A stretch of 40,542 nucleotides of DNA from Macrostomum lignano (taxonomy: Eukaryota): the NCBI GenBank assembly GCA_002269645.1, contig NIVC01004612.1, positions 1 to 40,542 of the forward strand. Direction: 5' to 3'. Position numbers and translations under genes: made by a program. Under the pieces are notes generated by a model, which worked only from the letters and a program-made list of their open reading frames with translations, was not told where the DNA came from and made no database searches. Shown in pieces: positions 1,293-39,374 of this stretch (position 1 is the stretch's first letter; each line of letters opens with the position of its first letter).

Positions 1293-1855
1293 GTTTTACG
1301 GCCCGGCTGGATAACCAGCGGGAGCTGCCAAAGTTTAGGGCAAAGGGCGTTGAATATGTGGTGAAGTTAGACGACACAGTGATTTACGCGAGACATTCGC
1401 TAGTATGCTCGAGGTGTTTAAGCAGGATTTGGCGGGGGATGATTTTATGGCTGCAAAGTTTGAGAACGACAACATGCTTAAAGCGGCGCATACTCCTCCG
1501 GTGCGTGCAGCCCGCATGACGGCGGAATTGCTGTTCAAGCACATTGACAAGATTGTGCAGTCGGATGCCACTGTCCTGACGAGCAACTTTTCCATCCGTC
1601 TGCTCAAGGCCTGGGTGCCTCGAGGTGGCTGCGCCCTCGAGAACAAGCATCTGGAGGAGCGCCATGCTTTCTCGCGCCACTATGTCCGCATCACCAACAC
1701 GGACAAGAGCTGCCTGCTGCGAGCTCTGGTCGTGGCATGCGCCTATCTCCAACTTGTGGCCAAGGCGATCACCAAGAAAGTGTGGCAAACAATCAAGGCC
1801 AATTCGTCCGCCCAGACTAATCTAGCTACAGAGCTCCAAATTGAAGTAGGCCTCT

Positions 1856-2128
1856 ACACGATAAGTTATGCACGGATTTTCATGAAATTTTTACCATAAG
1901 GCTTACTAAAAAAATCATACTCTGAAGAGAATTTCAAATAATTTTTACACAGTATCATGGAATACTAAAAGAACCATTTTCTGATAGGAATTTTAACTAA
2001 TATGCATAGTATCAGGGATTACTAAAAGAACCATTTTATGGATTACTAATATACTTTTATACATATCAGGGATTACTAAAAGAATTGCCTTACCCCCCCC
2101 CCCCCTACACAGACTCTTCAAACTGTCT
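1856..2128. mobile_element. 273-bp AT-rich insertion interrupting polB
   Basis: tct at 1853-1855 and 2126-2128. Removing 1856-2128 restores the frame ELQIEVGLSQTGPFGVDVLPE. Three internal copies of tatcagggattactaaaagaa and a poly-C tract. Confidence 0.7.
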
Positions 2129-4198
2129 CGCAGACCGGCCCTTTCGGGGTGGACGTACTGCCCGAGGCGATCCTGGCCCTGAACCGCTTGCATCCTGGCC
2201 ACGATTTTGGTGTACGGGTGTACAGGGCAGAGGAGGCCAACACGTGCATCTTCAACCTGCCCGGCACCGAGATTCTGCACCTACACCTGGTTGAGCAGCA
2301 CTTCAATCTGGTCACCCGGTTGCCAGCGTTTTTCGGCTCCATGCACTACTGCTCCAAGTGCGAGATGGCCTACGACTGCACCAACGCCGAGCACAAGTGC
2401 GCCAACGCCTGCAGCACATGCAAGACTCCAGGTGCCAACTGCAAGGCTAACCGCGTATATGTGAGATGCCATGATTGCGGGCTAAATTGTTATAATGCTC
2501 AGTGTCTAGAAAATCACAAGCGCAAGAATAAGGCGGGTAGATCTCGCTGTGATTCAGTCTACGTTTGCGGCACGTGTGGCTATCTAGAAGAGCTAAAAGT
2601 AGGCCAGGCTCCAGAGAATCAGTGTGGTCACGTTAAGTGCCCAGTCTGCAAGCAGTACGATGAAACTGCCACCCACGAGTGCTTTGTCACCCCGCCTAAA
2701 GCTTAAGAGTCTAGCGCGCCGTACGTTTACTAAGATTTCGAGACGTACGTTGACTCTGACAAGCAGCACCGGGTACACTTGGTCACAGCAGCCACATCCG
2801 TGTGAGGCGTGTCCTAAACTCTTCCCCAGGCCCCGCTGCTGCGCGTGTGGGGGGTTGCACAGCTCAGCCAATTGCATTGCGGGGCGCGATCTGGCACGAG
2901 ATTTTACTGCCTGTCTCCCACAATGACTGTGCTTGCGGGATGCGAGAGTTTGTTTCAGTTGGGCCGCACTGAATTGACGCCTTTTACTGCTGGCTGACTA
3001 GTATGTTCAAGCAGGGCGCTATTGCTATTGCACACAATGGCTCTGCGTATGACGCATTCCTCCTGCTCGGAGCCCTACTCAACGGACTGGCCAAGAAGCC
3101 GCAAGTGATCTTCCAAAACAGCCGCCTAATGTACATGAAGAGCAATAAGATTTTATTCAAGGACAGCCTCAAATTCATCCCTATTGGTCTGGCGCAAATC
3201 CCAAAGGCGCTTGGTTTTGGCACCCAACTAACCAAAGGAAATTTCCCGCATGTGTTTAACCAGCCGCAAAACTGGGGCTACGTGGGGCCTTACTGCTCGA
3301 TTGAAATGTACGGCGGGAAGAAGAATAAGCAGCACGACTCCGTCGCAGACTGGCTGGCCAAGCAGGAGGGCCAAGTGTTTAATTTCAACAAGGAGTACCT
3401 GGACTACTGCCTGCAGGAAACTCTAATTTTGCGGGAACGCTGTCTTAAATACACCCGCCTGATTAAGAACATTTGCGGACTGGACGCATTTGCCCAATCC
3501 AACACCATTGCGGGCTTGGCCATGGCAGTATTCACAAAAGTTTATGGAGCCCACTAAACACTCTTGGGGTGATTTCCCGCCGGTCAGATGAGCAGTCGTA
3601 CAATGCGCGGTGCTGGCTTGCACATTTGAATGCAACCGAATTTGGCGGCAGTCTGCTGACAGCCGACTCTGGCGGCGAGGCTTTCGCCATGGGCCGTAAG
3701 GTGGACGGTTTCGACCGGGAGACTATGACAGTGCTCCACTCCAGTTTCATGACTGCTTCTACCATGGCTGTCTTAAGCGCTTCCCCAACGGCGACGTGCT
3801 GCACCCGCTTAAGAACCAGCCAATGCGGGCAATTTATGAGGAGACTGAGCGCTTTAATCGGCTGCTCTCCACTGTCCTGTCTTATCTCTCCTCTCTAGTA
3901 AAAATCCTGCGATCTTGGGCAAAAATATTTAGAATGTTAGTTACATCAACTTAGCTATATTGAAGTCATACAAAGTGAGGTTTATTTTTAGATGTCATTT
4001 TTACTCATCTCACAAAAGTGAAAGTTTGTTTTCACAATAACTAATTTTAAACTCAATTGGAGATGTTTTCCCTTCAGTTTATACTGAGCCCCAACTGGGC
4101 TCCCCCATCCTGAAACCTCTGGACGCGTCCCTGTATAGGCTCCATAGGCCCACAGTTAATTGGAGGCTGATACCGAAAGTGTGAGTTTGGGCCATTGT

Positions 4199-4526
4199 CA
4201 TCCACTTTTCTCTCTCCCACTGTTTCTGGTGCTCTCAAAGCACACAAATTCTTCCTCTACACAAGCAATATATTGAACACAGATCTCTGGATCCAGGAGG
4301 TTCGCACTGAGTATCTGAGTGACCTGCGAGACAACTAGAAAGAGTAGGCTACTAAAAGTAGTATGAGTGGAACATGTGCACTATGGTTTCTAGACATCAC
4401 TAGCATCATGTTTAAGGGGACGAAATTCATCATTATAGTTTCAAGATGGCGCGAAAAAATGGTCCCTTTCCACTCACACCTCTGGTTTCTTTTCCAGATG
4501 GATACAGCGCCACCGTCGCCAACGCC

Positions 4527-4557
<31 letters not shown>

Positions 4558-4570: not shown

Positions 4571-4641
4571 GGAAGCAGTGGTCTAAGGCTGACAATTAGT
4601 TAAAGTTAGACTGACGCTAACAATTTGCTTTTGTTTGCTCT

Positions 4642-5022
4642 CAGACTAACTTGTCTGTGTCTTAGTGTCTCAGTGTCTGTCTTAGTATGTCTTAGTGTCT
4701 GTCTGTCTGTCTGTCTGCCTGTCTGTGTCTTAGTGTCTGACTGTCTGTCTGTCTGTCTGTGTCTTAGTGTGTATGTCTGTCTGTCTGTGTCTTAGCGTCT
4801 GTCTGTGGGTCTTTCTATGTCTTAGTGTCTGACTGTCTGTCTGTCTGTGTCTGTCTGTCTTAGACTAGCCTAGTCTTAGACTAACTTGTCTGTGTCTTAG
4901 TGTCTCAGTGTCTGTCTTTGTCTGTCTTAGTATGTCTTAGTGTCTGTCTGTCTTAGTGTCTGTCTGTCTGTCTGTGTCTTAGTTTCTGTCTGTCAGTCTG
5001 TCTGTCTGTCTGCGTCCTAGTG

Positions 5023-5057
<35 letters not shown>

Positions 5058-5248
5058 TTATCTGTCTGTCTGTGTGTCTGTCTGTCTGTCTGTCTGTCTG
5101 TCTTAGTGTCTGTATGTCCGTCTGTGTCTTAGTTTCTGTCTGTCTGTCTGTGTCTGCCTGTCTGTGTCTTAGTGTGTCTGTCTATCTGTCTGTCTGTCTG
5201 TGTCTTAGCGTCTGTCTGAGTGTCTTTCTATGTCTTAGTGTCTGTCTG

Positions 5249-5325
<77 letters not shown>

Positions 5326-5330
5326 GTTTG
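4642..5330. repeat. Compound (TCTG)n microsatellite with tcttagtg interruptions
   Basis: Direct reading; internal duplication agactaacttgtctgtgtcttagtg at ~4643 and ~4878. Confidence 0.95.
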
Positions 5331-10477: not shown

Positions 10478-10486
10478 ATTACATAA

Positions 10487-10930
10487 TCATCCACTTTTCT
10501 CTTTCCCACCGTTTCTAGTGCTCCCAAAGCACACAAATTTTTCCTATACACAAGCAATATACTGAACACAGACCTTTAAATCCAGGAGGTTCACCCTGAG
10601 TATCTGAGTGACCTGCGAGACAACTAGGAAGAGTAGGCTACTAAAATTAGTATGAGGAGGACATGTGCACTATGGTTTCTAGACATACACTAGCACCATG
10701 TTTTAAGTGACGCAATTCATCATTATGGTTTCAAGATGGTGCGAAAAATGGTTTTTTTCACTCAACTCTGGTTTCTTTTCCAGATGGATCAGGATCAAGC
10801 GCCACCGCCGCCGGCGCCACCACCGCCGGCGCCACCGCCACCACCACCGGCGCCACCGCCACCACCGCCGCCGCTGCCTCAGCGCCGCCGCATTCGGCGC
10901 CGAATCCGGCGCCTCCGCAGCAGCGGCCTG
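10487..10930 (+). repeat. Dispersed repeat copy 2 with Pro-rich exon (MDQDQAPPPP...)
   Basis: Homologous to 4199-4570; ATG at 10784 directly after ttttccAG. Confidence 0.85.
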
Positions 10931-11004
10931 CGGCTATAAAAACTTGTGTATCTCCAAATGTGTGCGCAAAACTGTCAAGTGTCAAATTGCGCATTGCGCT
11001 GGGT

Positions 11005-11459
11005 GGGCTGGGCTATCTGATTGTGGGGAAAGTTTTCGGAATTTTTTAACATTTTTAAACAGATGTCCCTAAGGAATAAAGAATAATACCAATTCACAAA
11101 AAATCACTATTTCACTATTTCAGACAGACAGGCTAGCAGGCAGACGGATGGACAGACAGACAGACAGGCCGAGAGACAGGCAGACATACAGAAGGACAGA
11201 CAGACATACAGAAGGACAGACAGGCAGACAGACCGATACAGACAGACATACAGAAGGACAGACAGACTGACAGGCAGGCGAACCGATACAGACATACATA
11301 CAGACACACAGAAGGACAGACAGAGACAATTCCGAGAACTTTCCCTACAATCAGATATGAACCCTCGGGCGAAATGGTTTGAAGTGCGTAGATTTGTTTT
11401 GTTTGTTGTTTTGTTTTGCTTTAAATAAAATGGTTCGCCCGAGGGTTCTTACCCAGCCC
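11005..11459. mobile_element. MITE-like module with nested inverted repeats around a (CAGA)n microsatellite (DINE-1/pearl-like architecture), copy 1
   Basis: 30-bp IR 11014-11043/11328-11357 (2 mismatches) encloses (CAGA)n; perfect 15-bp IR 11359-11373/11434-11448; outer gggctggg/cccagccc. Confidence 0.55.
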
Positions 11460-11875
11460 CCTTTTTGGATTAAAAATCTTTGCCTTCAATTTCTTCCTTA
11501 TTTATTGATCATACCATAGTATAAGCTTGGCAAGTTGTAATCAGTAAAAAAGCATTGCACACTGTTACGATTTACATTAAAAAAATATTACTTAGGACTG
11601 CTGTTCAATGCAACCAATTAAGTTCAATTCCAGCCCCCAGCAGCCTTGGTTTGGCCACTCGGCTACGTTCTGATACTTGGCGGCACTGCATCCTACCATC
11701 CTACGAGTTATTGCATCCTACTACAACAGATAAGTACATTCCATCCACAATTGACTCGTTCGTCTTAAGCAAATACCCTCCAGAATCCACCCTGGGTCTT
11801 TACCCTCCAGAATCTTCAGCAATATGTAACGAAGACAAAACTAACCAGTTAAAAACATTTTGCACTCTCACTCAG

Positions 11876-13747: not shown

Positions 13748-13860
13748 TTTTCAAGATGGTGCGAAAAATGGTCCTTTTCACTCAACTCTGGTTTCTTTTC
13801 CAGATGGATCAAGCGCCCCCGTCACCGCCGCCGCCGCCGCCGACACCAGCGGCCTGCGGC
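13748..13860 (+). repeat. Dispersed repeat copy 3 (short) with Pro-rich exon (MDQAPPSP...)
   Basis: ttcaagatgg..ctcaactctggtttcttttccAG-ATG at 13804; followed by a local duplication of gcggcctgcggctgtgacaaattgcgctgggtgggc. Confidence 0.85.
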
Positions 13861-13928
13861 TGTGACAAATTGCGCTGGGTGGGCGCCTCCGCAGCAGCGG
13901 CCTGCGGCTGTGACAAATTGCGCTGGGT

Positions 13929-14336
13929 GGGCTGGGCTATCTGATTGTGGGGAAAGTTTTCGGAATTTTTTAACATTTTTAAACAGATGTCCCTAAGGTA
14001 AGAATAATACCAATTCACAAAAAATCACTATTTCACTATTTCAGACAGACAGGCTAGCAGGCAGACGGATGGACAGACAGACAGACAGGCCGAGAGACAG
14101 GCAGACATACAGAAGGACAGACAGGCAGACAGACCGATACAGACAGACATACAGAAGGACAGACAGACTGACAGGCAGGCAGACCGATACAGACATACAT
14201 ACAGACATACAGAAGGACAGACAATTCCGAGAACTTTCCCTACAATCAGATATGAACCCTCGGGCGAAATGGTTTGCTGTGAATTATATTTTTTGTTGTA
14301 AATAAAATGGTTCGCCTTAAGGGTTCTGCCCAGCCC
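13929..14336. mobile_element. MITE-like microsatellite module, copy 2
   Basis: Same IR set: 13938-13967/14223-14252 and 14254-14268/14311-14326 (imperfect); outer gggctggg/cccagccc. Confidence 0.55.
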
Positions 14337-14964
14337 ACTTTTTAATTGAAAATCTTGGCTTTAATTTCTTCCTTATTTATTGATCATACCATAGTATAAG
14401 CTTGGCAGGTTGTAATCAGTAAAAAAGCATTGCACACTGTTCCGATTTACATTTAAAAAAATATTACTTAGGACTGCTGTTCAATGCAACCAATTAAGTT
14501 TAATTCCAGCACCCCAGCAGCCTGGCTTATTATAGCGTATTCATTCATATAAATACAATCCGTAAAGATTTAAACTGAATATATTTTAACTTTTATACAT
14601 GGAACTAAAGGAAGTCAAGTCGATGTGTGAATTTACTCTCTTAGTCGACAGCTATGCCCCAGTCATTTGTTTAAAGTCGTAAAACAAGTAACTATAGAAC
14701 TTTGTGTTCGATCGTGGGTCTAATGCAAAGTGAAAGGACATTCAGTCACCTATTATAGCAATAAAATTGTCTGGGCAAGCATACGTATTGGGGTGGGTGT
14801 TTAAATTTCGGACTAATTTGGGGGTTTCGGCCCAAAACCAACCCCCCCCAATCTTTGGTCTTTTCTCCGCCACGGCGTATCACATTTTATTCTAGTATTA
14901 TACATGTACTTAATAGAGCTATAAAGTTAATAGCCGAAATCCCACCTTAAGCAAATGACTATCG

Positions 14965-24068: not shown

Positions 24069-26070
24069 ATGGCATGGCATGCTATTCTCAAACTTTTGCA
24101 AGACTCGGTTCCATTGAACGTCGGAGGACACGAACACGAAGGTAGCACTAATGAAGAGGGGGGTGAGGTCGCCTTCGATGAATTAGACGATTTCGATTTC
24201 GAGGGCGACTGGCCGTCCTGTAATTCTGAGACCGAGAGTCCGCCAACAAGTGATGACGAGGATGATGAGGCAAGTCATGACGCTCCGGAGGTGCAGAAAG
24301 ATGGGTCAAGGGAGATGGAGCTCATTTTCGAATTGCTTTATTTCATGACTCATTTCGGGATCAGCAAGCGTGCCATGGAGTTTTGTCTTCTGATGTGGGC
24401 CAAGCGAGGGTATGCCGTGCCTCGATCTGTCCCAGGACTTCGGAAGTTTAGCCAGCAGACGTCCAGCTTTGATTGCGTGGCAGTTCCTAATGGGAAGTTT
24501 GGATACTGTGGAATTCTGGACAACATTAAATTTTGTGTTCAGCGAGGCATGTTGCTGCTGGGTGAGGTACAGAATCGTTTAACGATTTTCGTGAATTTTG
24601 ATTTCCAAGGTTGGGCTTTGGCCTATCCTTATGACTATTAGCGGTTGTTCGTATTCGATCCCACTCCCTGTTGCTGTCTTTTGTGGATATGGCAAGCCGC
24701 CTCTTGAGACCTACTTAGCTGCTTTTGTTGACGAGTTGCACCATCTTATGACTAATTTTGTAAGTATCGGCAACCAATTTGTTAAAATTGGGCATTGCAT
24801 AATTATTGCTGATGCGCCGGCAAGGGCTTTTTTACCATGGATGAATGAATAGAATGGATTGCTATTCTGGCTCTGGCTATTTTCGTTTTTGACTCTTTTG
24901 CATCCGGTTCCCCCCCGTGCCTTTTCATTGGTTGATGATTGCCATAGACAATTTCGCTCGTGTTTTGAAATAAAGGGGGAAGACCTACGAGCGCTCGATA
25001 TTCTCTGCAAGTAACTGACATTCTCAGTTCTTTGCGCTTGTGCATCGAAAGAAAGGGGCGAAGGCCGAAAATTGTCTATGGCAATCATCAACCAATGAAA
25101 AGGCACGGGGGGGAACCGGATGCAAAAGAGTCAAAAACGAAAATAGCCAGAGCCAGAATAGCAATCCATTCTATTCATTCATCCATGTTTTTTACTCGCT
25201 ATTTTATCTCATTCTGCTAAACTTGCGTGTGGCTACTGCAGAATTGAGGGGCATTTTTTGGCTGGAAGAATGTGCTTTCTGTATCAGCAGTGTGAAGCCC
25301 ATACTAATCGTGCATACATAGCCTTCCAGGAGAACAACCAAACATTAATGTCTCCATTTTTGGGTCTTATTGATTTTGTACGCGATGTTCCACCCGAGTA
25401 TATGCACTCAATTTTGCTTGGTATATTCAAGCGCATGTGCACGTACATTTTTTCTCACGTTAAAGGGGTTCGTTTGCGTTGCCAACTATCTTTAGCTCAG
25501 TGGGAACAATTTTTAAAGCTTATTGGCACAGTCGCCAAGTGTCTTCCTCGCAAATTCTATCACAAGCTTCGAGATCTGCGTGAATTTGAAAATTACAAGG
25601 CGGCCGAATTTCTTACTTTGTTCATTTATCTCGCACCTGTTGTTTTTAAGCATTTTCTTCCTACCGATTTCTTTGATCACTTGATGCTCTTGAACTTTGC
25701 AACCTACTGCTTTGTATCAAAAGAGTACCATGATATCCATTTTGCCCCGGCCTCTGCATGTTTAGATTGTTTTTTTCAGCAAGCTGAGGCATTGTATGAC
25801 TTTAAGCTACAATCATACAACACGCATCTCCTGCAGCACCTTGCATTTTTTGTCCGGCTTTATGGGCCAATGGATGAGTGGTCATCGTTCCCATTTGAGA
25901 ATTATAATTCAATTTTGAAGCGGCGCATTCATTCCACGCGGAAAGTTTTTGAACATGCAGTCAATACGATGTCAGTTATTTGGGATGTTTTTCCCGTGTT
26001 TCAGCTGAGCAACAATTTTTTTCTGCTTCATCCCCGGACAACTGTTGCATTCTGGGTCACAGCCAAATAA
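24069..26070 (+). pseudogene. EnSpm/CACTA-type DDE transposase, disrupted
   Basis: IFVNFD..WPIL..AVFCG.GKP..FVDEL..IADAPARAFL|LAILSHSAKLACGYC..EYMHSILLG..YKAAEF..YNTHLLQHL..YGPMDEWSSFPFENYN. Small deletion with frameshift near 24600 and MITE insertion at 24836. Confidence 0.9.
24836..25187. mobile_element. 352-bp MITE with perfect 119-bp TIRs and 8-bp TSD (hAT-like TSD length)
   Basis: TIRs 24836-24954/25069-25187 starting CATGGATGAATG; TSD TTTTTTAC at 24828-24835 and 25188-25195; excision restores ARAFLLAILSH. Confidence 0.95.
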
Positions 26071-27436: not shown

Positions 27437-29100
27437 GAGAGCCGAATTGACACACTACGGCTTATGGGAGCCAAATTGCACGAGCCATTGATTCTTATGG
27501 GAGCCGTTTTGACATACTGATCCTTATGGGAGTTGTTTTGACATACTGCGACTTATGGGAGCCATTTTGACACACTGTTGCTTATGGGAGCCGTTTTGAC
27601 ACACTGTTGCTTATGGGAGCCGTTTTGCACGAGCACTTTTGATACATAGATTCTTATGGGAGCCGTTTTGACACACTGTTGCTTATGGGAGCCGTTTTGA
27701 CACACTGTTGCTTATGGGAGCCGTTTTGACACACTGTTGCTTATGGGAGCCGTTTTGACACACTGTTGCTTATGGGAGCCGTTTTGACACACTGTTGCTT
27801 ATGGGAGCCATTTTGCACGAGCACCTTTGATACATAGATTCTTATGGGAGCCATTTTGACACACTGCGGCTTATGGGAGCCGTTTTGACACACTGCGGCT
27901 TATGGGAGCCGTTTTGCATGAGCACTTTTGATACATAGATTCTTATGGGAGCCGTTTTGACACACTGTTGCTTATGGGAGCCGTTTTGACACACTGTTGC
28001 TTATGGGAGCCGTTTTGACACACTGTTGCTTATGGGAGCCATTTTGCACGAGCACTTTTGATACATAGATTCTTATGGGAGCCGTTTTGACACACTGCGG
28101 CTTATGGGAGCCGTTTTGCCACACTGCGGCTTATGGGAGCCGTTTTGCATGAGCACTTTTGATACATAGATTCTTATGGGAGCCGTTTTGACACACTGTT
28201 GCTTATGGGAGCCGTTTTGACACACTGTTGCTTATGGGAGCCGTTTTGACACACTGTTGCTTATGGGAGCCGTTTTGACACACTGTTGCTTATGGGAGCC
28301 ATTTTGCACGAGCACTTTTGATACATAGATTCTTATGGGAGCCGTTTTGACACACTGCGGCTTATGGGAGCCGTTTTGCCACACTGCGGCTTATGGGAGC
28401 CGTTTTGCACGAGCACTTTTGATACATAGATTCTTATGGGAGCCGTTTTGACACACTGTTGCTTATGGGAGCCGTTTTGACACACTGTTGCTTATGGGAG
28501 CCGTTTTGACACACTGTTGCTTATGGGAGCCATTTTGCACGAGCACTTTTGATACATAGATTCTTATGGGAGCCATTTTGACACACTGCGGCTTATGGGA
28601 GCCGTTTTGACACACTGCGGCTTATGGGAGCCGTTTTGCATGAGCACTTTTGATACATAGATTCTTATGGGAGCCGTTTTGACACACTGTTGCTTATGGG
28701 AGCCGTTTTGACACACTGTTGCTTATGGGAGCAGTTTTGACATACTGGTTCTTATGGGAGCCGTTTTGCATGAGCACTTTTGATACATAGATTCTTATGG
28801 GAGCCATTTTGACACACTGCGGCTTATGGGAGAAGTTTTGACACACTGTGGCTTATGGGAGCCATTTTGCACGAGCACTTTTGATACATAGATTCTTATG
28901 GGAGCCATTTTGACACACTGCGGCTTATGAGAGCCAAATTGCACGAGCCATTGATTCTTATGGGAGCTGTTTTGACACACTGCGGCTTATGGGAGCCGTT
29001 TTGCATGAGCACTTTTGATACATAGATTCTTATGGGAGCCATTTTGACACACTGTGGCTTATGAGAGCCGTTTTGCAGGAGCACTTTTGACACACTGTTA
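27437..29100. repeat. Higher-order satellite of 29-bp and 43-bp units (cttatgggagcc core)
   Basis: 29-bp A (cttatgggagccgttttgacacactgttg), 29-bp A' (ending gcgg) and 43-bp B units arranged (A)n-B-A'A'-B with n=5,3,4,3,3; 33-bp variants at 27461 and 28924. Confidence 0.97.
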
Positions 29101-29549
29101 GTCAGACTGGAATTTTTTCATCTGAAGCAAAGAGTAAAAGCATTTCTGACAGTTCAAGCTTACTGGAGCCAATCTGCACAACTAAACTCAGCATATGGGG
29201 CGTATGAGAGCCGAATCGCATGAATGATTTTACCATAGACAGTTGAACGAAGTAGAATCGCGTAGATGGGTTACTAACGCAATTTGGTCGAAATCGAATC
29301 AGTCTATAGTGCATCTATATAATTAGCAATATCTGTTAACGATCAGACACGGCGACCTGTACAAAAGCGGTCTCAGTTAGGCGTGTTGGCCATAGACATA
29401 AAATATATATCGCGCGTTTCGTCGGTTATTTTAAACGATTAGCTCGGCAAATATAGAATTCTTCCCCTACTACGTCTTTTACACACTGAGCTTCTCAGTT
29501 AAATTTTATTACAAATTTACAAATTTATACATCTTCTTATCGAATTAAA

Positions 29550-31576
29550 ATGGCCGACGCTGTTATGACTGCTTGTCCGATTTGTGGCATGTTGATCTCT
29601 AATAAGAACATGGCCAGGCATATCGCCAAGCAACATAGTAATTATGTCGACGAATTCAATTGGAGCACTGTCGTCGAGCCTCAGCGACCGGCTGTTGATG
29701 CGCCGATTATACTCAAAGCGAAGGCAATTTGGCACTCGTTGCGAGTACGGCAGCAACCAGCTGGACAGCTTAACAAGCGACCATGTCCTGATTGTGGCAA
29801 GTATGTCAAACAATTGACAAGACATCTTGCCCATACATGTGCCCAAAGAAGACGTCGTCATCCAATTGTCGGACAAACCTGTCAAGCGCCTGGTGCGACG
29901 AGCGCATGCTTATCGGAGGCAAACTTGCATCGGACTGTTAACTGCCTGTCGTCAGTTTATCCGCTGGTCCATCTACAAGTGGTTTACTCGACGGTGTAGA
30001 CGTTGGACCAAGCAGTGATTCCAATTTTCAAACTGCGACCAAGACAGTCAACAGTGAACGCAGCCGCGCTCAAACGGTGACCCCGGCATCGAACACCGAA
30101 CGTCAATCGGCAGCTAAGTTCGCAACCGGGCCGACCAATGCCGCGCCTGAGCATGTTAGACCGTGTGTCGTCGAATCTGTCGACGAGTTGTACAACCAAG
30201 TCGAACAGAGACCATCTGGCGACGACCATGTTCATCCATCGTCTAACAATGATTCGGTCGGCAACAGCATCGCCGATGCGACAATTCGAAAGGCGCGCCA
30301 ATTCCAAGGTAATAATAATTAATCATTAAATTCTTCTATATTAGTAGATAGTATCGCACAATATTATTGTATACTTATCGACGTGTACCAATTACATAGT
30401 TAATGGATATTGTTTTATGCTTAAACAACCAACAGGCTATTTGACTGATCTGCAAAAAACAGCTAGTCAACTTGACAGGCTTGCAGAACAGCTTCGTCCA
30501 GACATGGAGACTAGCGACGTAGACATTGTCGATGTGACACGTGTACTCCGTGGTCACGTCGAATTGGCGTCTAAACAGCTGGTCCGTGCACTCGAGACGA
30601 GCATCAGTCAGGTCAAGCGTCCTGCTATCGATAGACTGGCCAGCGCGGTACAACGGCACCAAGAAGTAGGAGAAGAGATCGCGGTTGGTAACGTCGTCGC
30701 GACATCAGACGACGAGATTGTTGCCAGCTTATTGGACGCGATCGAACAGTGTGCCAAGGACAATGAAACTGCAGATTCTGAGCAGCAAGGCAGAGTCATT
30801 GTCGTACCAGCGCCGCCTGACAACGACCAAGCCGCCGACGTGTCGTCTGGTTCCGATGCCGACATTCAGGACGAAGCGGATGACAATGCGGGTGGTTCCG
30901 ACAGCAGTGTGAGCGAGACTGATGATCCACTTGCCGTGATCGACTATGGTGAAGCACAGTCTATCGCCGAGGACATGACTAAGCGACTTGTCGATATTTG
31001 GTGGAAAATTAATAACAAGATCGAAGAAAACAAGTCGCATGTCCATCGTCGGAAACAACTGACCACTGCGGTTCGAGGAACGCTTGCCAAATTAAAACAT
31101 AAGCTGGGTGTCAGTCTGGAGACTTGGTTAAATGCTCCGCACCAAGTTGCCACAGATTTGACAGAGATGAAAACCCGCGGTGTCTGGCAAGCAAGTACCG
31201 CCGGAGTAAAAGCATGCCAATTACAGTGCATCCTAGCCGCAGTCAAGACTTTATTGGAAAATGAGTCTGATTTCGGTGCCATCACTGTAATTAGGGCACT
31301 CCGGTTATCGGAACCACCCAACGGCGTATTCACTGGCGCAGCGGATGACGTCACTACCGCGGCCAGACTATTACATGGAATAGCCAGCGGAGTAAAGAAG
31401 TTGTCCAGCAATCTATACCATCGAAAGACAGTGTCTGCGTTTCTAATACCTCGAATCGATGCTGTCTACGTAAGTACCTGTTTGTTTGTTTGTTTGTTTG
31501 CTTGATTATATTTTTGAAATTATAATCTATATTATGTGTAGATTAGAACTATAAACTATGATTGTGCATATGATGG

Positions 31577-31646
<70 letters not shown>

Positions 31647-33579
31647 AAGAACGATAATGATGATAATGATGATACATAAAGATTAATTTTTGCTTCTCTT
31701 ATAATACACACAGGCGCAACTCGGACGGGTCAGCCGACAACAGGACAATCGGTACCATCTAAATGATGATGCGCGACAACAAAAATACACCGAGTTGTTC
31801 CTGACTGTCGAAGAGTATGACCTCGTAAGAAACAGGCTACTGGAATTGGTCAATATGATCGAGAAACATTCCTGGTCAGATTTACCAACAGAAGGTACCT
31901 GGTCCGACATTGCGCGGCTGGTCAATCAAACGAATTCTCCGCGAGGAAGATGGCGCGATTTCATAATGCCAATCAGTCGCGAGCTGGCATTCTTGGGCAC
32001 TGCAATATTCCATAGCAATCGTGTATTGCCGTGGATTTATCTGTGTCGGCATCACCTCGAAGACGCGTTAAAAAACAAAGGCTCCAGTATGGATACCGTC
32101 ATAACGCGATTACCACCTAGCGAGGTGCCACACAAGCAAGGTTCGCGAGGCCGTGGCGCAACACTGTTGTCACCGAGACGATTGTGTCAATCGTTCATTC
32201 TATGGTGCGAAAAGTTTGTCACGCCTGCGCTCGAAGACCTAGATGTGCAAGTGCCCGATGAAATGCAATATATCTTCCCTACTTCCAACGGGACGGCTCG
32301 AGTCACTGGTGACTATTCGAGGCTCGTGGTCGACGGTTCGGTTCGAGTGATTGGTCGCAAATACCGAGCCAGCGATGGACGGCGCAATCAATTGTCTGCG
32401 TATGCGCGTTTTCATCCGGACCAGATCGAACAGGTGACGCATTTGTACGACACTTCGAAGCCTGTTGTCACCCGGTACTACGCCGCCGCAGCAATTGACG
32501 CAGCCCGACTCGAAGTTGCTACCGACTTGAGGGACTGTTTCGAAAAGTTCGCTGTCAACCAAACTGGTGACGAGCGGAGCAAATCGAAATGCGCAAAAGT
32601 CCAACAGTCCATCTTGGATGCGTCGACGCTTGCGACAGCAATCGAGCAGCAGACCAGTGAGTCGGTGACGAAGACGACGACGACAACGGGAAGCAGACGA
32701 CGACGACGACGAAGCGTTAGCATCGTATTGCCAGAGCAGCACGATCAAGCCGACGTTGATACTGCACCGACTAAGACGTCTGGCAAATGTCGCCGCTCTC
32801 AGTCGCTGTCGCCGCGTCCACCATCGTCCGACAAATGTCGCCTCTCTAAATCGCCGTCGCCGCGTCCGCCATCGTCCAGCAAAGTTCGCTCATTACCGCC
32901 GTCTCCGCGCTCGCCGTCGTCTGGTAAGAGTCGTCTGAAATCAAACTCTCACCAGCTGGCGTCGACATTGTCATCGTCGTCGAGCAGAATGTCGCGATCC
33001 AAGTCGCCACATTCGCCACCAACAAAAAAACGACGCGGTATTATCAATTTGCCGAACGTCGATCTAGACGCCGACGATGATGACGATGCTGACGAAGACG
33101 CCGATGACGACGGGGCAACAACTGGCTGTCAAAGAAGCGATGACGCGACTCATACGCCAAATGTACAGACTAGCCATCGCCGCCGCTGTGACAACCGATC
33201 TGTACCTAAATCGGGGTCGTTGCTCTCCTCTGTACGTACACGCATTGGATCGAGCGTACCTGCCGATTTAAGTCGATTGGCTGCTGCTAACGATGATGCT
33301 GACGATCGGCGATTAGTCCAGACGCGGTCGGAGCGGCGCACTCGTTTGTCTGGTACATCGACTGACAGTGCTACGTCTTCAGTGGCTGTTAATCAGTCGA
33401 TTGCTGCGACATCGAATGTGCGATCATCGAGCAGGCGACGCAGATTGATGCAATTGACTGCGTTGCGACTGGATCGCGTGGGGGTCGACCGGATCAACAG
33501 CAACCGCAACAACACAGGAGCTGTATTGTCACCCGATCAGGTCGTGTCGTTCGGCGCACAAAGATGCTTGATTAAGTAA
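29550..33579 (+). CDS. Three-exon zinc-finger plus tyrosine recombinase (Crypton-like) gene, ~1219 aa, one 1-bp frameshift near 29945
   Basis: Exons 29550-30308, 30436-31469 and 31714-33579 join in phase through GT-AG introns. N-terminal CxxC..H fingers; YR-like motifs HSNR (32011-22), HKQ (32131), IFPTSNG, SDGRR (32371), LYDTS..TRYY (32443-81); S/R-rich tail with PPTKKRRG. Confidence 0.7.
30309..30435 (+). other. Predicted intron 1 of the YR gene (127 bp, phase 1)
   Basis: caag|GTAATA ... ccaacAG|gc; the join reads FQ-G-YLTD in frame. Confidence 0.75.
31470..31713 (+). other. Predicted intron 2 of the YR gene (244 bp, phase 0), containing (GAT)n at 31571-31673
   Basis: tac|GTAAGT ... acacAG|gcg; the join is open into ORF 31795. 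Confidence 0.8.
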
Positions 33580-35134
33580 AATATCGATTTATATCTATTT
33601 TTTTACCGATTACGCCACATCACAATGGTTGTGTCCAACACAAACAAGGAGGTAATTAGTAATTATTTCTTAGAAAAACAAATCAAGCTTCGACCATGTG
33701 AAACGAAATCGAAACTTATCATCAAGCCTCACTCAGTTGTAGACGCAACCATATGTGAATGAATATATGTAGCACAACTGTACATAAAATTATGCGCGCA
33801 CACGTGTATATATATGCATAGATGTATGTGCGTTTTCATGTCACTGATTCTTACATGAACCATTTGTGTATATAGATGGTGATTATTAATGTGATTATTA
33901 GTGTGTTTATTATTGTTGAATTATTGCAATGTAAATAGTATAGAGCGATTTAGCTTGATTGTGTGCGTTTCATACACCAAGATAATATCGAGCGCATTCT
34001 AACTAATATATTAATAACAGTCTATCTAATAATGCAATATGCAAGCGAGAAGCGAGACCAATCGATTGGCTGGTGGATTGTTAATTACAAAAAAATATCG
34101 CGCTCGATATCATCTTGTTTTTCTTTTCTTTTTAATTACTATTAAAAGCGATAGATCTACCTGTTGTTCTATCTATATTAATAAAGCTTTTTGGTCAGAA
34201 AAATATATTTCTATGTTAATTTGTGCTCGATAATACCTAATTTCCTAAGAAATGAGGTTTCTCGTCCTTCTACTTAAGTCGTCATTAAGTTCACCATGGC
34301 AACAGGTAACAAGTCTGTAAAAATACATTTTCATGTAAAAAAAAACAGTATAGATATCAGGGATATGAAATAATTAATTTCGATGTTTACTATTCTATCT
34401 TGACACTAAAATTCCAACAGAAAAATTTTGTTAATACGGGTGTTACATGTTCCTCAATTCTTTTCGAATTTTTACGATTACATTTGGCTTAAAAGCTAAA
34501 GTTGTTCAATAGATTTTAAATAACAGGTCCGTCCATGGATAATAATTATAATAAGCCGTTGTTAATTTTTACACTTGTTTTATTTGTGCGCATAATTGAT
34601 TATTAGATAAAGCAAGTGACAATACATTTCACTATTAATCGTAGTTGTCGAATCTAAAGTCAGCAATTAATTAAGACTAAATACAAGTAATTATATTTCA
34701 ATTGCATTGTACCTTATGGTTTGTTTGACACTTTGTTCTAAGAGAATTTACCTATGCTCTAAATACTAATTGGAATGAATTGTAATTGGCACAGTTAAAC
34801 AGTTCACACGGTGCTACCATAGTCGGAAAATTGCTTAAAAAATTCACCGGAAAAGTTATTTGTCACAATTGATACTCGAATTAGTAAGGATTCCTTAGAA
34901 GAAAAAATAAAAATCGTAGTTGTTCGTTTTAGCTCAAAAAGTGCTATTTTCAGTTTTTACCATAGACGAATTAATAAAAAAGCGAAGTATCACCGTACTG
35001 TTTAGAAAACAATTCGATTGAGTCTAGGATCAAATGCAAGCATTAAAAAACATGTTACTGATATTCATCAATGATTGGTTGATGCCTAAAAGCTACACAT
35101 TTGACTTGGATGGGCCTACCACAAGAGAGTCTTA

Positions 35135-35264: not shown

Positions 35265-35656
35265 TTATACTCGTACTCACCCTGTTCGGATGAGTCACTG
35301 GTTCAGATCCACCCAGCCCGCCCAGACCCAAAGCTTTATCCTCAGCCAATCCCTCCACCATTCTAAATACGTAGGTAAGCACTCGTACGCTGTGGCTTGC
35401 TCTCTCTCTTCCTGAGCTGTACATACAAAGTATGATATTGTACATTGGTGTGTGCTCTTTGCACCAAGCACTCGCCGAACCACCCTCAGTCTTGTAATGC
35501 CATCGTGCTCATTTATGTTTTTCATCAATATAAACGTCAAACCTCAAACGTAAGGAGGTCCCGTCTGAGGAGGTTTTGTTGTCCAACTCTGTCTAAAAAT
35601 GTTTCATCTAAACATTTAGTTGCAACGATTGTGCTTGCGTGTACACAGTTTTTGTC

Positions 35657-37680
35657 ATGCCACTGTCACACGAAGATTGCCTCAATCGGATCTGCATTTT
35701 GTGCTTTTCGAAGGCAAAAGAGTTGCGATCCGTTACGCCCTGGATGCTGGCCATCATCAATCGGCACAGTGGCTGGCTCTACGATCCGCACGATAATCGC
35801 GTTCCCAAGGCAATTTGTGGCACGTGCAGATTCGCTCTGCAGCAGCTGGAGAAGGGCCAACGGGCTGATGTGCCACCGATGTATGACTTCAGGGACGTGC
35901 AGCCACTGCCGGTGACCCGATCAGTGGGCCAAGATGGATGTGACTGTAAGATCTGCAGCACTGCCGGATGCAGAGTCCATCCTCCAGAAGCCAACGTCCC
36001 AAAGCGGTCTGTTGGGCGGCCGAGTTTGACGGCGGACGAGGCTACAACGCCCAAGCCCGAAATGGTCAAGGTCTGCTCCTTCTGCATCAGTCCTATTGGC
36101 AGGGGCAAGCCACACACATGCAACAGACCCACAAGACTGCAGAATGCGCATGCCCTGTTGCAGGAAGCGTCCCCGGAATTCCCAGAGCGGCTCGCCACAA
36201 CAATTGTGCGGCAGAAACTTATTACTTCAGGCTCCGGAGACACAGCCTCGGCATCACCGTGCTGGCATCCAACGCTGGACCCTCAATGAGGCTGGCCATG
36301 AATCCGCCGCCTCCGAAGCCAACAGCGGTCTTCACGGCGGATAATATGCGTCATCTGCAAGGTGAGCTGGGCCTCAGTTCGCGCAAAACGGAGGTTGTAC
36401 TTCGAAATCTTCGGTCTTCGATTGGCGCCTCAGCTGTCCAGAGCAACATCCGGCAGACATTGAGGGAGATGGATCACGAACTGGATGACCTCTTCCAAGC
36501 GAAGCAGCTGGCGTTTATCCGAGAAGAGAGGGGAAGGCAGACTCCAGCTGAGCAGTGGGCCGTTGTCTGCACTGATGTGGTCGAGCTCCTGGGCCGCATG
36601 ATTGCAAACCGCCGGCTGATGGATGTTGCTTCCACAGTCGTCAGAATTGGAATCGATGGTGGAGGTGGGTTCTTGAAGCTCTCGATATCCGTTTTTGACC
36701 TGTGCGTGTGTGCTGGTGAGGAGCAGCAGAAGGGGGCTGATCGCCGATTCCTCGACTCTGGCGTGCATCGGGCCGTCATCCTTGGCATCGCTCCCAACAC
36801 GCAGGAGAACCACAGGAACCTGGAGTGTCTCTGGGAGAGCTGCCGCCTGCAGCTTCTGTCGGCGAACATCAGCATCGCGTGCGACCTAAAACTTGCCAAC
36901 ATCCTGCTCGGCTTGATGGCCCACAGCAGCTCGCATCCCTGCACCTGGTGCAACGTCAATAAAGGGAGCCTTGACAGCTGCGGCGAGCCAAGGACCTTTG
37001 GCAGCCTCAGTGAGAAATACCAGGCCTACCTGGCTGCTGGTGGTGAACGCCAACTAGCTAAGCACTTCGATAACGTCGTCCAGCCCAGCATCTTTTCCGC
37101 TGGAGTTGAAGTCCCGGTGTTGCACATTGTCCCTCCGCCGGAGCTGCACCTGCTGACCGGTGCGGTCCATGTGCTGTACGAGGGTCTGCATGGTGTGTGG
37201 CCCGAGAGCGAAGCTTGGCTTACAGCTTGCAATGTCCAACGTGACAAGCATCACGGTGGCAGCTTCACTGGCAATGCGAGCCGCAAGTTGCTGCGCAACG
37301 TGGACCTGCTAGAAGCGATGTGCCTGATGGCAGCGCTGCCATTTGTTGCCGCCCTTCGAGCATTGAACTCGGTCGTGGTGTCATGCTTCGGGAGTGAGCT
37401 GCGTTCCAATTTCGAGCAGGCGATTCAGGAATTTCGCACCAGTTATGCCGATCTCGGCATTTCCATCAGTCCAAAAATCCACGCGATTTTCCACCACGTC
37501 GGTGACTTCTGCCGCGCCAAGGACAAAACAGGCCTGGGGCCATGGAGCGAACAATGCACGGAGTCGATGCACAGAGACTTCCTCCTGCATTGGGAGAGAT
37601 ACAAGGTGGCGAGCACGCATCCTCTCTTCGCTGAAAGGCTCCTGGCAGCTGTGCAGTGTTACAACAGTCGCCATTTGTGA
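35657..37680 (+). CDS. Chapaev transposase, ~674 aa with a single 1-bp frameshift near 36250
   Basis: Chapa domain H-x7-C-x2-C (HEDCLNRICILC), P-x3-C-x2-C (PKAICGTC), CDCKIC; core GIDGGG, ACDLKLAN..HSSSHPCTWC, PELH, KIHAIFHH, WSEQCTESMH. One extra G at 36250-51 fuses ORFs 35639 and 35968. Confidence 0.9.
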
Positions 37681-39374
37681 GCGTTTTATGGAAAGTGCGA
37701 ATCCGGAACTGCAACAGTTGAACTGCAACGCAAGTATTGGACAGTTATGAAGTCAGAAAATTTAGTAGCACAATTTTTCAACCCACTCAGTTATTGTAGT
37801 CAAAGCCTCCAGGAAAATCAACCCACTAAATGTCCCCTTTGAAGTCTATATATTAAATTGCAATTGTAACGATTCTAATTTGAATTGTAAGGTAATACAA
37901 AACTTTGTACGATAGGGGTGCTTTCACAAACCCGAAATTTCATAGCATCAAGAACATATTCACATGGTTTGGGGTTAGATATTAAGGTGAAAGAATATAA
38001 AAAATAATTTTTATGTTGTAAAATTTGGGGTTTGTGAAACGCCATAGCACCATGCTGCTTTGAGTTGTTTTGCTTCATGTAAGACAGTGTGCTAAGCTTC
38101 GAGTAAATTTAAAATGTGCATACAATACAATATTCATGGACTTGCTGAAAAAATTTGTGAATTTGTTTCGATTTAAAGTGTTATAACTTTTCTTTAATAC
38201 GCTTTTGACAACAATTTGAAAGAATTCAATTACAATGCAGTAAATTTCCAATATAATCTATGGTAAAAACAGAAAATTGTTTTTTTGAGCTAAAATGAAC
38301 GAGTACAATTTTAATTTTTTCTTCCATGGAATCCTTAATAACTCGATTGTCGATTGTGACAAATAACTTTTCCGGTGAATTTTTAAAGCAATTTTCCGCC
38401 TATGGTAGCACCGTGTTCATTATGATCTAAAATTTCTTTGATCTACATAGTTTGGCATACAATTGAATGTCTGACCCACTAGCTAGATCAATGTAAAGAT
38501 TATCTATGTCCTGTGTATAGATAAGCTACATTAATATAAAGCTAAATATATTGGTTAAGACAGACTACAACCATATTATGCTTTAATATTAATTTTCTTT
38601 GAATTGTATAAATAACCTATGAAAGTCAAATTTCAAATAATGAGTATTTGTGATGGACAAAACAACTTATTATTGATGCTCTTATCAATAATAGTTTTCT
38701 AATATCAATATGCATACAAGATATGCTAATTTATTGAATTAATTAGGAAGAAAATATATTTTATTAAAATATGATTAGCACATAGTTTGGTTTCCCGTTT
38801 ATTATGATTCAAGGCAAGACCAGATTTGGTCACAATGTCGCATATCACACCAATATAAATATAAGGATAACTATATGCAAAGGTCTGTCATTTTATATAT
38901 TGAATTTCAATTCTTTTCTTCTTTTAATAAAAAATAAAGGCTAAATGTAGCTAGGTCAAAGACAAAGTATGATAGAGAACAGCAAAATAATCAATTAGCA
39001 TGTTGGAACCAAGCCATATTGTATATTTATTGGCCAATTGCAATATAGAATTGGAATTAAATGACTAGATGATTAAATTGGATAGACTTCAACAAGGCAA
39101 AAATTAAGAATATACATATTTAGTTCAATAAGTCATTTCAATTTCAATAAGTCATTTGAATAGATTTTTAATTTGAGTTTTGGAACTCAGGGCATACAGG
39201 CAAAAAAAATAGAAAAATTCACATAAGTGACACTATATGAATGTATCTATTATTATTTATTTATTTATTTATTTATTACATAGTGTAAACATAGATAAGC
39301 CTAGTATTCTATGGCCTAGGCATATCTTATATGCCTATAATGGCTAAATAGGTATAATTGGCAACAATAATTGG

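Follow-up and report, generated by a model that had tools for sequence, protein, structure and literature searches.

Between positions 29550 and 33579 (+) of a contig of the flatworm Macrostomum lignano (NIVC01004612.1, assembly GCA_002269645.1), whose 40,542 nucleotides on the forward strand make up the window analysed here, lies a gene for a predicted zinc-finger protein with what we read as a very divergent domain of the tyrosine recombinase (YR) type. The locus is a real three-exon gene, the assembled copy of which lacks one base, and the best explanation for it is one copy of a small, young M. lignano gene family. The core of the encoded protein belongs to a family that is absent from known family libraries. 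We put at roughly 0.45 the probability that this protein is the recombinase of a low-copy, Crypton-style DNA element, moving by cut-and-paste or through a circular form, or of a very recent derivative of such an element, while descent from the YR superfamily, or possession of its fold, has slightly better than even odds.

The coding sequence is distributed over four open reading frame (ORF) pieces on the + strand: frame 0 from the ATG at 29550 to 29996, frame 2 from 29942 to 30319, frame 0 again from 30348 to 31502, and frame 1 from 31705 to 33576, followed by the stop at 33577-33579. In the initial annotation of the region, one base added at 29945 and the removal of two in-phase GT-AG introns had united these pieces in a reading frame of 3660 nt (1219 codons). 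Apart from one acceptor, this model was backed by paralogous gene models, and the spliced, frame-corrected sequence contains no internal stop. Exon 1 is made of a first part in frame 0 (29550..29945, +), open from the start codon and encoding the zinc-finger module, and a second part in frame 2 (29945..30308, +), which encodes a Ser/Thr/Ala-rich linker. Exon 2 (30487..31469, +) contributes an acidic linker (30819-30926) and a helical region with a WWK motif (30990-31010). The introns have a G+C content of 28-30%, compared to 51-53% for the exons. Support at the protein level comes from the M. lignano UniRef entry A0A1I8GN39 (P0001), 100% identical to the translated locus over 279 aa that span junction 2, and from A0A1I8G604 (P0006), a nearly full-length, intact paralogue of 1084 aa with the UniProt name 'C2H2-type domain-containing', which shows 95% identity to the frame-2 part of exon 1 (P0006 residues 224-344) and 97% to exon 2.

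Comparison with the paralogues also allowed the splice junctions to be assessed one by one. Those proposed at the outset were donor 30308/GT with acceptor AG/30436 (phase 1) for intron 1, and donor 31469/GTAAGT with acceptor CAG/31714 (phase 0) for intron 2. The first donor is backed by P0006, whereas the first acceptor had to be given up, as P0006 uses TTGCAG/30487 instead (junction QFQ/EQLRPD), which yields a GT..AG intron of phase 1 and 178 nt (30309..30486, +; G+C 30% versus 52% in exons). Both acceptors are in phase; with the upstream one, intron 1 would end at 30435 and measure 127 nt, and the 17 extra codons gained from acceptor 30436 are supported by no gene model among the paralogues. 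Intron 2 (31470..31713, +; GTAAGT..CAG, phase 0, 244 nt) contains an (ATG)n microsatellite at 31570-31673 and rests on paralogue gene models. Its proposed junction, IDAVY/AQLGRV with the acceptor at 31714, is spanned by the identical gene model P0001 and is also used by P0004 and P0005, while P0002, P0003, P0006 and P0007 use an alternative acceptor at 31744, 30 nt downstream (IDAVY/DNRYHL; intron end 31743). With the paralogue-supported junctions, the protein would have a length of 1192-1202 aa. Finally, the P0006 gene model leaves the frame in the Ser/Arg-rich tail at a donor at 32923 (GGTAAGAG; ..PSS/EITR), and a third, alternative intron with this donor is possible.

The frameshift maps to 29942..29947 (+), bracketed by a frame-2 TAA at 29939-29941 and a frame-0 stop at 29997. 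The extra C postulated at 29945 proved justified by the intact paralogue: P0006 reads ...QQTVEQPVVSLSAGPS... across the window's switch from frame 0 (...HRTVNC) to frame 2 (PVVSLSAGPS), and its sequence TVEQPVVSLSAG is continuous over the site. Because P0006 reads straight through the switch point, the window copy is one base short compared with an intact gene; lengthening the CC at 29945-29946 by a base brings back the 1219 codons. A short intron in place of the frameshift was rejected, as no GT..AG pair fits 29942-29996 and the paralogue is colinear there. As assembled, the missing base at ~29945 would separate the finger module from the body of the protein; the copy would have been disabled only recently, unless the deficit is an indel of the assembly.

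The same site marks a sharp change in similarity to P0006. Upstream of it, the finger module (29550-29945) retains the same ligand patterns as P0006 at only 34% identity (E 9e-24); downstream, over the remaining 3.6 kb, the two proteins are 93-97% identical, with the step from 34% to 95% falling at the frameshift itself. This arrangement suggests either that the finger module was swapped between family lineages or that the body alone was homogenised by gene conversion. Moreover, as the frameshift and the identity switch coincide, the odds of an imprecise but real recombination junction are no lower than those of an assembly indel. Long reads underlie the M. lignano assemblies, and an indel, under which the window copy would be an intact, expressed gene, appears rather unlikely to us. 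It would agree with the fact that a single missing base is the only fault in 3.66 kb of coding sequence free of internal stops, with the complete identity of P0001 to the locus, and with the known imperfection and redundancy of the M. lignano assembly (PMC12801592). In contrast, the run concerned is only CC and not a long homopolymer, and a shift exactly at the drop from 95% to 34% would be expected of an imprecise recombination junction more than of a random sequencing error.

The existence of further copies is documented by protein models alone. P0001 shares its 90% cluster with five more M. lignano sequences; a seventh, P0002, is related to them but belongs to a cluster of its own. Over the 279 aa common to the gene models, at least six haplotypes can be distinguished, differing at 1-9 positions (0.4-3%), and several pairs of sites among them show all four combinations. 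As read from these protein sequences, such four-gamete patterns indicate recombination or gene conversion among copies. Exact sequence look-ups gave no contigs for P0001, P0006 and two ORFs of the window.

The core itself, from FLTVEEY to just past the candidate nucleophile (31798..32520, +), is conserved in three distant relatives, and the pattern of this conservation is indirect evidence for a recombinase origin. Candidate catalytic residues had been picked in the initial annotation from the single window sequence, and all of them are present: the box I Arg in HSNR (32020..32022, +), the Lys in VPHK (32134..32136, +), the Arg of an S-D-G-R that stands in place of the HxxR box (32371..32382, +), with the His changed to Ser, a Thr in place of the second His/Trp (YDTS; 32452..32454, +), and the Tyr nucleophile, second Y of TRYY (32479..32481, +). 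In a family alignment of four sequences that are 22-32% identical, only three of which extend to the C-terminal Thr and Tyr, each of these residues was found to be invariant. Invariant columns amount to 23 of the 213 that are fully occupied, including the HSNR Arg (4/4 members), the VPHK Lys and the DGRR Arg. The Lys is the sole invariant one of 7, and the Thr the sole invariant one of 15 (three members reaching this point, as for the Tyr); five of 21 Arg are invariant, two of them the predicted catalytic Arg, and one of only two invariant Tyr is the predicted nucleophile. Calculated residue by residue, the joint chance that all five predictions (R, K, R, T, Y) fall on invariant positions is ~8e-5. 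Since the residues had been picked beforehand from one sequence, we conclude that the YR logic had predictive power.

The spacing of these residues points in the same direction. YR catalytic domains start with an L-T-x-x-E-like motif; the catalytic spacings in XerD are 24, 72, 3, 23 and 9, and the last two distances in Cre and lambda Int are 23/22 and 9. In the family described here, FLTVEEY provides an invariant start of the L-T-x-x-E type, followed by R-38-K-79-(S)xxR-24-T-9-Y. A greedy hhalign path runs colinear with lambda Int 165-353, placing FLTVEEY on RLTADEY, the box I Arg on R212 and SDGR on H308-R311, and the candidate Lys lies between the sole two beta-strands of an otherwise helical, low-confidence AlphaFold model. 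The proposal of a YR-like domain with a variant active site thus receives genuine, though indirect, support from the invariance of the predicted residues and from their canonical spacing, whereas the profile and fold searches described below returned no match to go with it.

Several results weigh against assigning the core to the YR superfamily. Pfam, including PF00589 and DUF3504, gave no recombinase match for the exon products, for any family member or for the family consensus, the only matches being sub-threshold ones to zinc fingers. PHROGs and NCBIfam gave no match either, and sequence and profile searches of the PDB returned only chance matches (cytoglobin, TMPRSS6). When the family was compared by hhalign with eight phage recombinases, lambda Int and Cre among them, the probability was 0.1%, a score that 58 of 100 column-shuffled versions of the family also reached, and the greedy path mentioned above places the Lys and the Tyr off by 3-4 residues. 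The G-x-R-x-x-E context of box I is absent, and the position of the HxxR His varies across the family (S, M, T or Y). AlphaFold models were unusable, with a predicted local distance difference test score (pLDDT) of 37 for the single sequence and of 46, with a predicted template modelling score (pTM) of 0.37, for a five-row alignment. Foldseek searches of both low-confidence models against the PDB and BFVD gave only E values above 2. At this model quality, the searches speak neither for nor against the YR fold expected of the residues encoded at 31950-32500. Pointing towards a YR, Cre or Tre was the only enzyme family to recur among the non-significant matches of the second model (4 of 34 in the PDB, E 4-7, TM 0.12-0.18), with none for the first model.

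A novel, mostly helical domain that is not a recombinase, and whose R..K..R..Y resemblance is coincidental, would account for these negative comparisons, for the hhalign score equal to that of shuffled controls, for a box I without G-x-R-x-x-E and a box II without His, and for AlphaFold models that are almost all helix. Nevertheless, we consider such a coincidence improbable. The residues chosen a priori turned out to be the sole invariant Lys, the sole invariant Thr, two of the five invariant Arg and one of the two invariant Tyr (~8e-5, as given above), and both the R-24-T-9-Y spacing and the LTxxE start match those of canonical enzymes. Furthermore, hhalign is blind at such distances: in control comparisons, XerD-like and P4-like integrases were recovered at 95-97%, whereas Cre against lambda-like integrases reached only 0.3%. 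As that established pair fails alike, the failed hhalign comparison is not counted against a YR origin.

The name 'Ras-GEF domain-containing protein', borne in the source database by six gene fragments of the family (A0A1I8GN39, A0A1I8G5E4, A0A1I8J0A6, A0A1I8H110, A0A1I8J9Q8 and A0A1I8J916), might also be taken to favour an identity other than a recombinase. We rejected a Ras-GEF identity, the database name being its sole basis: no family member matches Pfam RasGEF at E up to 10, and no RasGEF chain appeared in the PDB searches. The label is probably an automatic false positive.

Outside M. lignano the family is extremely sparse. A HMMER scan with the 495-aa core against 1.84 billion representative proteins returned only three other sequences, at E 2e-9 to 5e-4 and 22-32% identity. 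All three lie on short contigs (1.5-2.4 kb), two belonging to a single JGI metagenome and the third to a Logan run assembly: L001 (JGI metagenome 3300040801, 54% G+C) needs a frameshift near nt 1200, L002 (Logan SRR31628394) has an AT-rich GT..AG intron near nt 1195-1290, and L003 (42% G+C) is from the same JGI sample as L001. The AT-rich GT..AG intron of one contig and the frameshift of another mark these relatives as eukaryotic. When the core and two family alignments served as queries in word-index protein searches, only M. lignano entries and P0010 came back, so that P0008 and P0009 are the sole new relatives added by the full HMMER scan; scans of metagenome and viral contigs gave no further ones. 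No orthologue in another flatworm or in any annotated animal proteome was detectable among the 1.84 billion representatives. On the evidence of the alignments, the wider family formed by the M. lignano sequences and the three environmental relatives is real and ancient.

Whether the gene belongs to a mobile element or to the host was judged from its distribution, its copies and its surroundings. For a mobile element speak the lack of an orthologue in other flatworms, the patchy environmental relatives, the single disabling lesion, the haplotypes with four-gamete patterns, the mosaic copies with fingers at 34% and body at 93-97%, and surroundings rich in satellites and transposons. The region between the end of a satellite array at 29097 and the next element at 34806 contains no reverse transcriptase, RNase H, terminal inverted repeat or target-site duplication, just as the initial annotation had stated; this absence is in line with what is expected of a Crypton, yet it is common to ordinary genes too. 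A retroelement of DIRS/Ngaro type was rejected, there being no reverse transcriptase nearby. On the other side, mobility is disfavoured by the failure to find, in the window, any terminal inverted repeat, long direct repeat or target-site duplication around the gene, or a second copy of it elsewhere. The two introns with alternative acceptors and the 330-aa Ser/Arg-rich tail also look more like those of a host nuclear gene, and the six to seven near-identical sequences are compatible with one locus, M. lignano being a hidden allotetraploid with a redundant assembly (PMC12801592).

Consequently, a host or domesticated gene has to be weighed as a possible, if less favoured, explanation. The product would then be a lineage-restricted nuclear protein with DNA-binding or regulatory functions, its recombinase-derived domain having been kept for DNA binding or for some specialised cellular recombination, the copies would be homeologues and alleles of a single locus, the one in the window being either a pseudogenised homeologue or an assembly error. 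The haplotype count (at least six, 0.4-3% apart) lies within the expectation for a hidden allotetraploid with a redundant assembly (PMC12801592), and as these two features could yield it alone, it is not diagnostic of mobility. Introns with alternative 3' splice sites, the long Ser/Arg-rich tail with its nuclear-localization-like motif, the absence of terminal repeats or a target-site duplication, and a divergence between copies that has its minimum (~2%) in the catalytic-type domain and its maximum in the tail all agree with a host gene, and a fusion of zinc fingers to a Crypton-derived domain has a precedent in WOC/ZMYM (PMC3212892). By contrast, a finger module at 34% beside a body at 95% is unlike the uniform divergence expected of homeologues, the locus sits amid satellite and transposon sequence and not among genes, and no orthologue was detected in other flatworms or any annotated animal proteome. 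Moreover, R, K, R and Y are invariant in this family, whereas domesticated DUF3504 domains usually lose the catalytic residues (PMC3212892; PMC13465315).

If the protein acts as a recombinase, its parts suggest how it might do so. The gene would encode a nuclear protein of ~1190-1220 aa with two zinc fingers, an acidic and a helical region, a very divergent YR-type domain and a disordered Ser/Arg-rich tail, the basic motif of which would direct nuclear import. The fingers and the helical region would position the protein on DNA. There, the two invariant Arg (HSNR, DGRR) would hold the scissile phosphate, the invariant Lys of the putative hairpin (VPHK) would protonate the leaving group, and the invariant Tyr (TRYY) would attack to form a 3'-phosphotyrosyl link. 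The HxxR His would be dispensable in this family, which has S, M, T or Y at the position, and the second His/Trp would be replaced by the fixed Thr.

Outside the core, two N-terminal fingers were recognised from their ligand patterns, both also present in P0006: a C2H2 finger, C-x2-C-x12-H-x4-H (29574..29636, +), and a C2HC finger, C-x2-C-x9-H-x4-C (29784..29840, +). Of the two or three fingers claimed initially, these two stand, and the third was rejected as it lacks a ligand pattern. Pfam scores for the fingers remain under the gathering cut-offs (zf-Di19 22.6 versus 27.5; zf-C2H2_4 20.2 versus 27). The fingers are followed by the Ser/Thr-rich and acidic linker, the helical region with the WWK motif, the conserved core and the S/R/P-rich tail of ~330 aa. 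The WWK motif of exon 2 is shared with L002, and the exon 2 region is all-helical in both AlphaFold models, at low confidence. The low-complexity tail (32600..33579, +), which runs to the stop codon, contains a 48-nt coding repeat (KCRxSxSxSPRPPSS; 32777-32877, +) present in 2.1 copies here and 3 in P0006, the nuclear-localization-like motif PPTKKRRG (33016-33039, +) and an acidic run (33061-33114, +). The acidic linker, the Ser/Arg-rich tail, PPTKKRRG and the motifs HSNR, VPHKQ, SDGRR, YDTS and TRYY were all located where they had been placed before.

The gene is set in DNA rich in satellite and transposon sequence. Upstream of it, a 1.66-kb satellite array (27439-29097) with a 29-nt unit and higher-order periods of 101 and 231 nt ends ~450 nt before the ATG, a degenerate unit being still visible at 29196-29223. 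Downstream, inverted repeats of 135 nt that are 90% complementary (34806-34940 and 38282-38416) enclose two ORFs, one with a weak zf-AD match (35639-36289), the other intact, 570 aa long and with no Pfam match (35968-37680). The segment 34806-38416 looks like a candidate DNA transposon bounded by terminal inverted repeats, as undecayed as the recombinase-like gene, and for this reason the claim of much stronger decay in the gene's neighbours holds only in part.

Other features are scattered farther away in the window. Three broken ORF pieces occupy 1405-3557 (+), the last of which (3003-3557) matches Pfam DNA_pol_B_2 (E 2.5e-13). They resemble a decayed B-family polymerase of the protein-primed type, probably left by a Maverick/Polinton-like element. 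Segments at 4193-4545, 10482-11585 and 13749-14460 are dispersed repeats, 85-96% identical and spaced by ~2.9 and 6.3 kb, adjoined by (GTCT)n-like microsatellites at 4615-5330, 11121-11342 and 14030-14243; they are segmental or tandem duplications, or copies of a short element. Between two ORFs of no known family (24069-24641 and 25258-26070) lies a perfect 119-nt inverted repeat (24836-25187; 100% complementary, 114-nt spacer), which may be a foldback structure or an assembly artefact.

A working recombinase at this locus would constitute a new lineage beside the known eukaryotic YR elements (DIRS/Ngaro/VIPER, Crypton, Starship), and would imply that a natural enzyme can work with other residues in place of both the HxxR histidine and the His/Trp. 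It would also carry a modular, apparently swappable finger module, in a regenerative model animal for which transgenesis tools are wanted. A more specific proposal, which we regard as speculative, is that the gene is the founding animal member of an unrecognised eukaryotic YR branch, invisible to profiles, with an R-K-x-R-T-Y active site and borne by a new low-copy element that swaps its DNA-targeting finger module. A host gene, in turn, would be unusual in having preserved the catalytic residues of a recombinase-type domain. In any case, no Pfam model exists for the family formed by M. lignano and three environmental eukaryotic sequences, and public databases mislabel it as 'Ras-GEF'. Our literature search found no paper linking M. 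lignano with Cryptons or tyrosine recombinases.

We compared the gene with the known systems that it most resembles. Telomere resolvases and type IB topoisomerases belong to the same DNA breaking-rejoining superfamily and retain the second His; in place of the HxxR His they have another residue (Tyr in ResT, Lys in vaccinia topoisomerase), yet DNA cleavage still proceeds through a tyrosine. As these enzymes cleave without it, loss of the His does not in itself show an active site to be inactive. The present family shows no sequence or fold match to such enzymes and no hint of hairpin telomeres or of supercoil relaxation.

With Cryptons (CryptonA/I of animals; Kojima and Jurka 2011, PMC3212892) the locus shares a single gene for a YR-type protein, no reverse transcriptase nearby, no terminal inverted repeats or target-site duplication, an animal host, tolerance of introns and a location in repeat-rich DNA. 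Animal Cryptons, however, are recognised by known YR profiles, keep R-H-R-Y and have neither terminal repeats nor extra domains (PMC3212892; PMC13465315), whereas the protein described here has a two-finger module, a helical region of ~280 aa and a tail of ~330 aa, matches neither PF00589 nor DUF3504, and has R-S-R-Y in place of the tetrad, or R-(M/T/Y)-R-Y in its relatives. Because the profile match and the R-H-R-Y tetrad both fail, the gene cannot be classified as a Crypton, and the membership in a Crypton(V)-like group first proposed for it was dropped.

The Crypton-derived DUF3504 genes (WOC/ZMYM2-4, QRICH1, KCTD1, KIAA1958) are similar in combining N-terminal zinc fingers with a recombinase-type C-terminal domain in a nuclear protein, which is the layout to be expected of the domesticated derivative that the initial annotation offered as an option. 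They differ in that the present family has no PF12012 match and has fingers of C2H2/C2HC and not of MYM type. Moreover, DUF3504 genes are widely conserved and have mostly lost their catalytic residues, whereas the present family is very sparse and keeps R, K, R and Y.

Finally, canonical recombinases such as Cre, XerC/D, lambda Int and Flp differ from this family in having His at the HxxR position (S/M/T/Y here), His/Trp where it has Thr, the G-x-R-x-x-E context that it lacks, and a box I-to-Lys distance of 23-32 as opposed to 38, and sequence similarity to them is statistically undetectable. Yet the order of elements is the same, with an LTxxE start, a box I Arg, a hairpin Lys, an xxxR box, a further residue nine positions before the Tyr, and the Tyr itself; the distance from the Arg to the His/Trp position is 24, compared to 22-23 in the canonical enzymes, and that from there to the Tyr is 9 in both.

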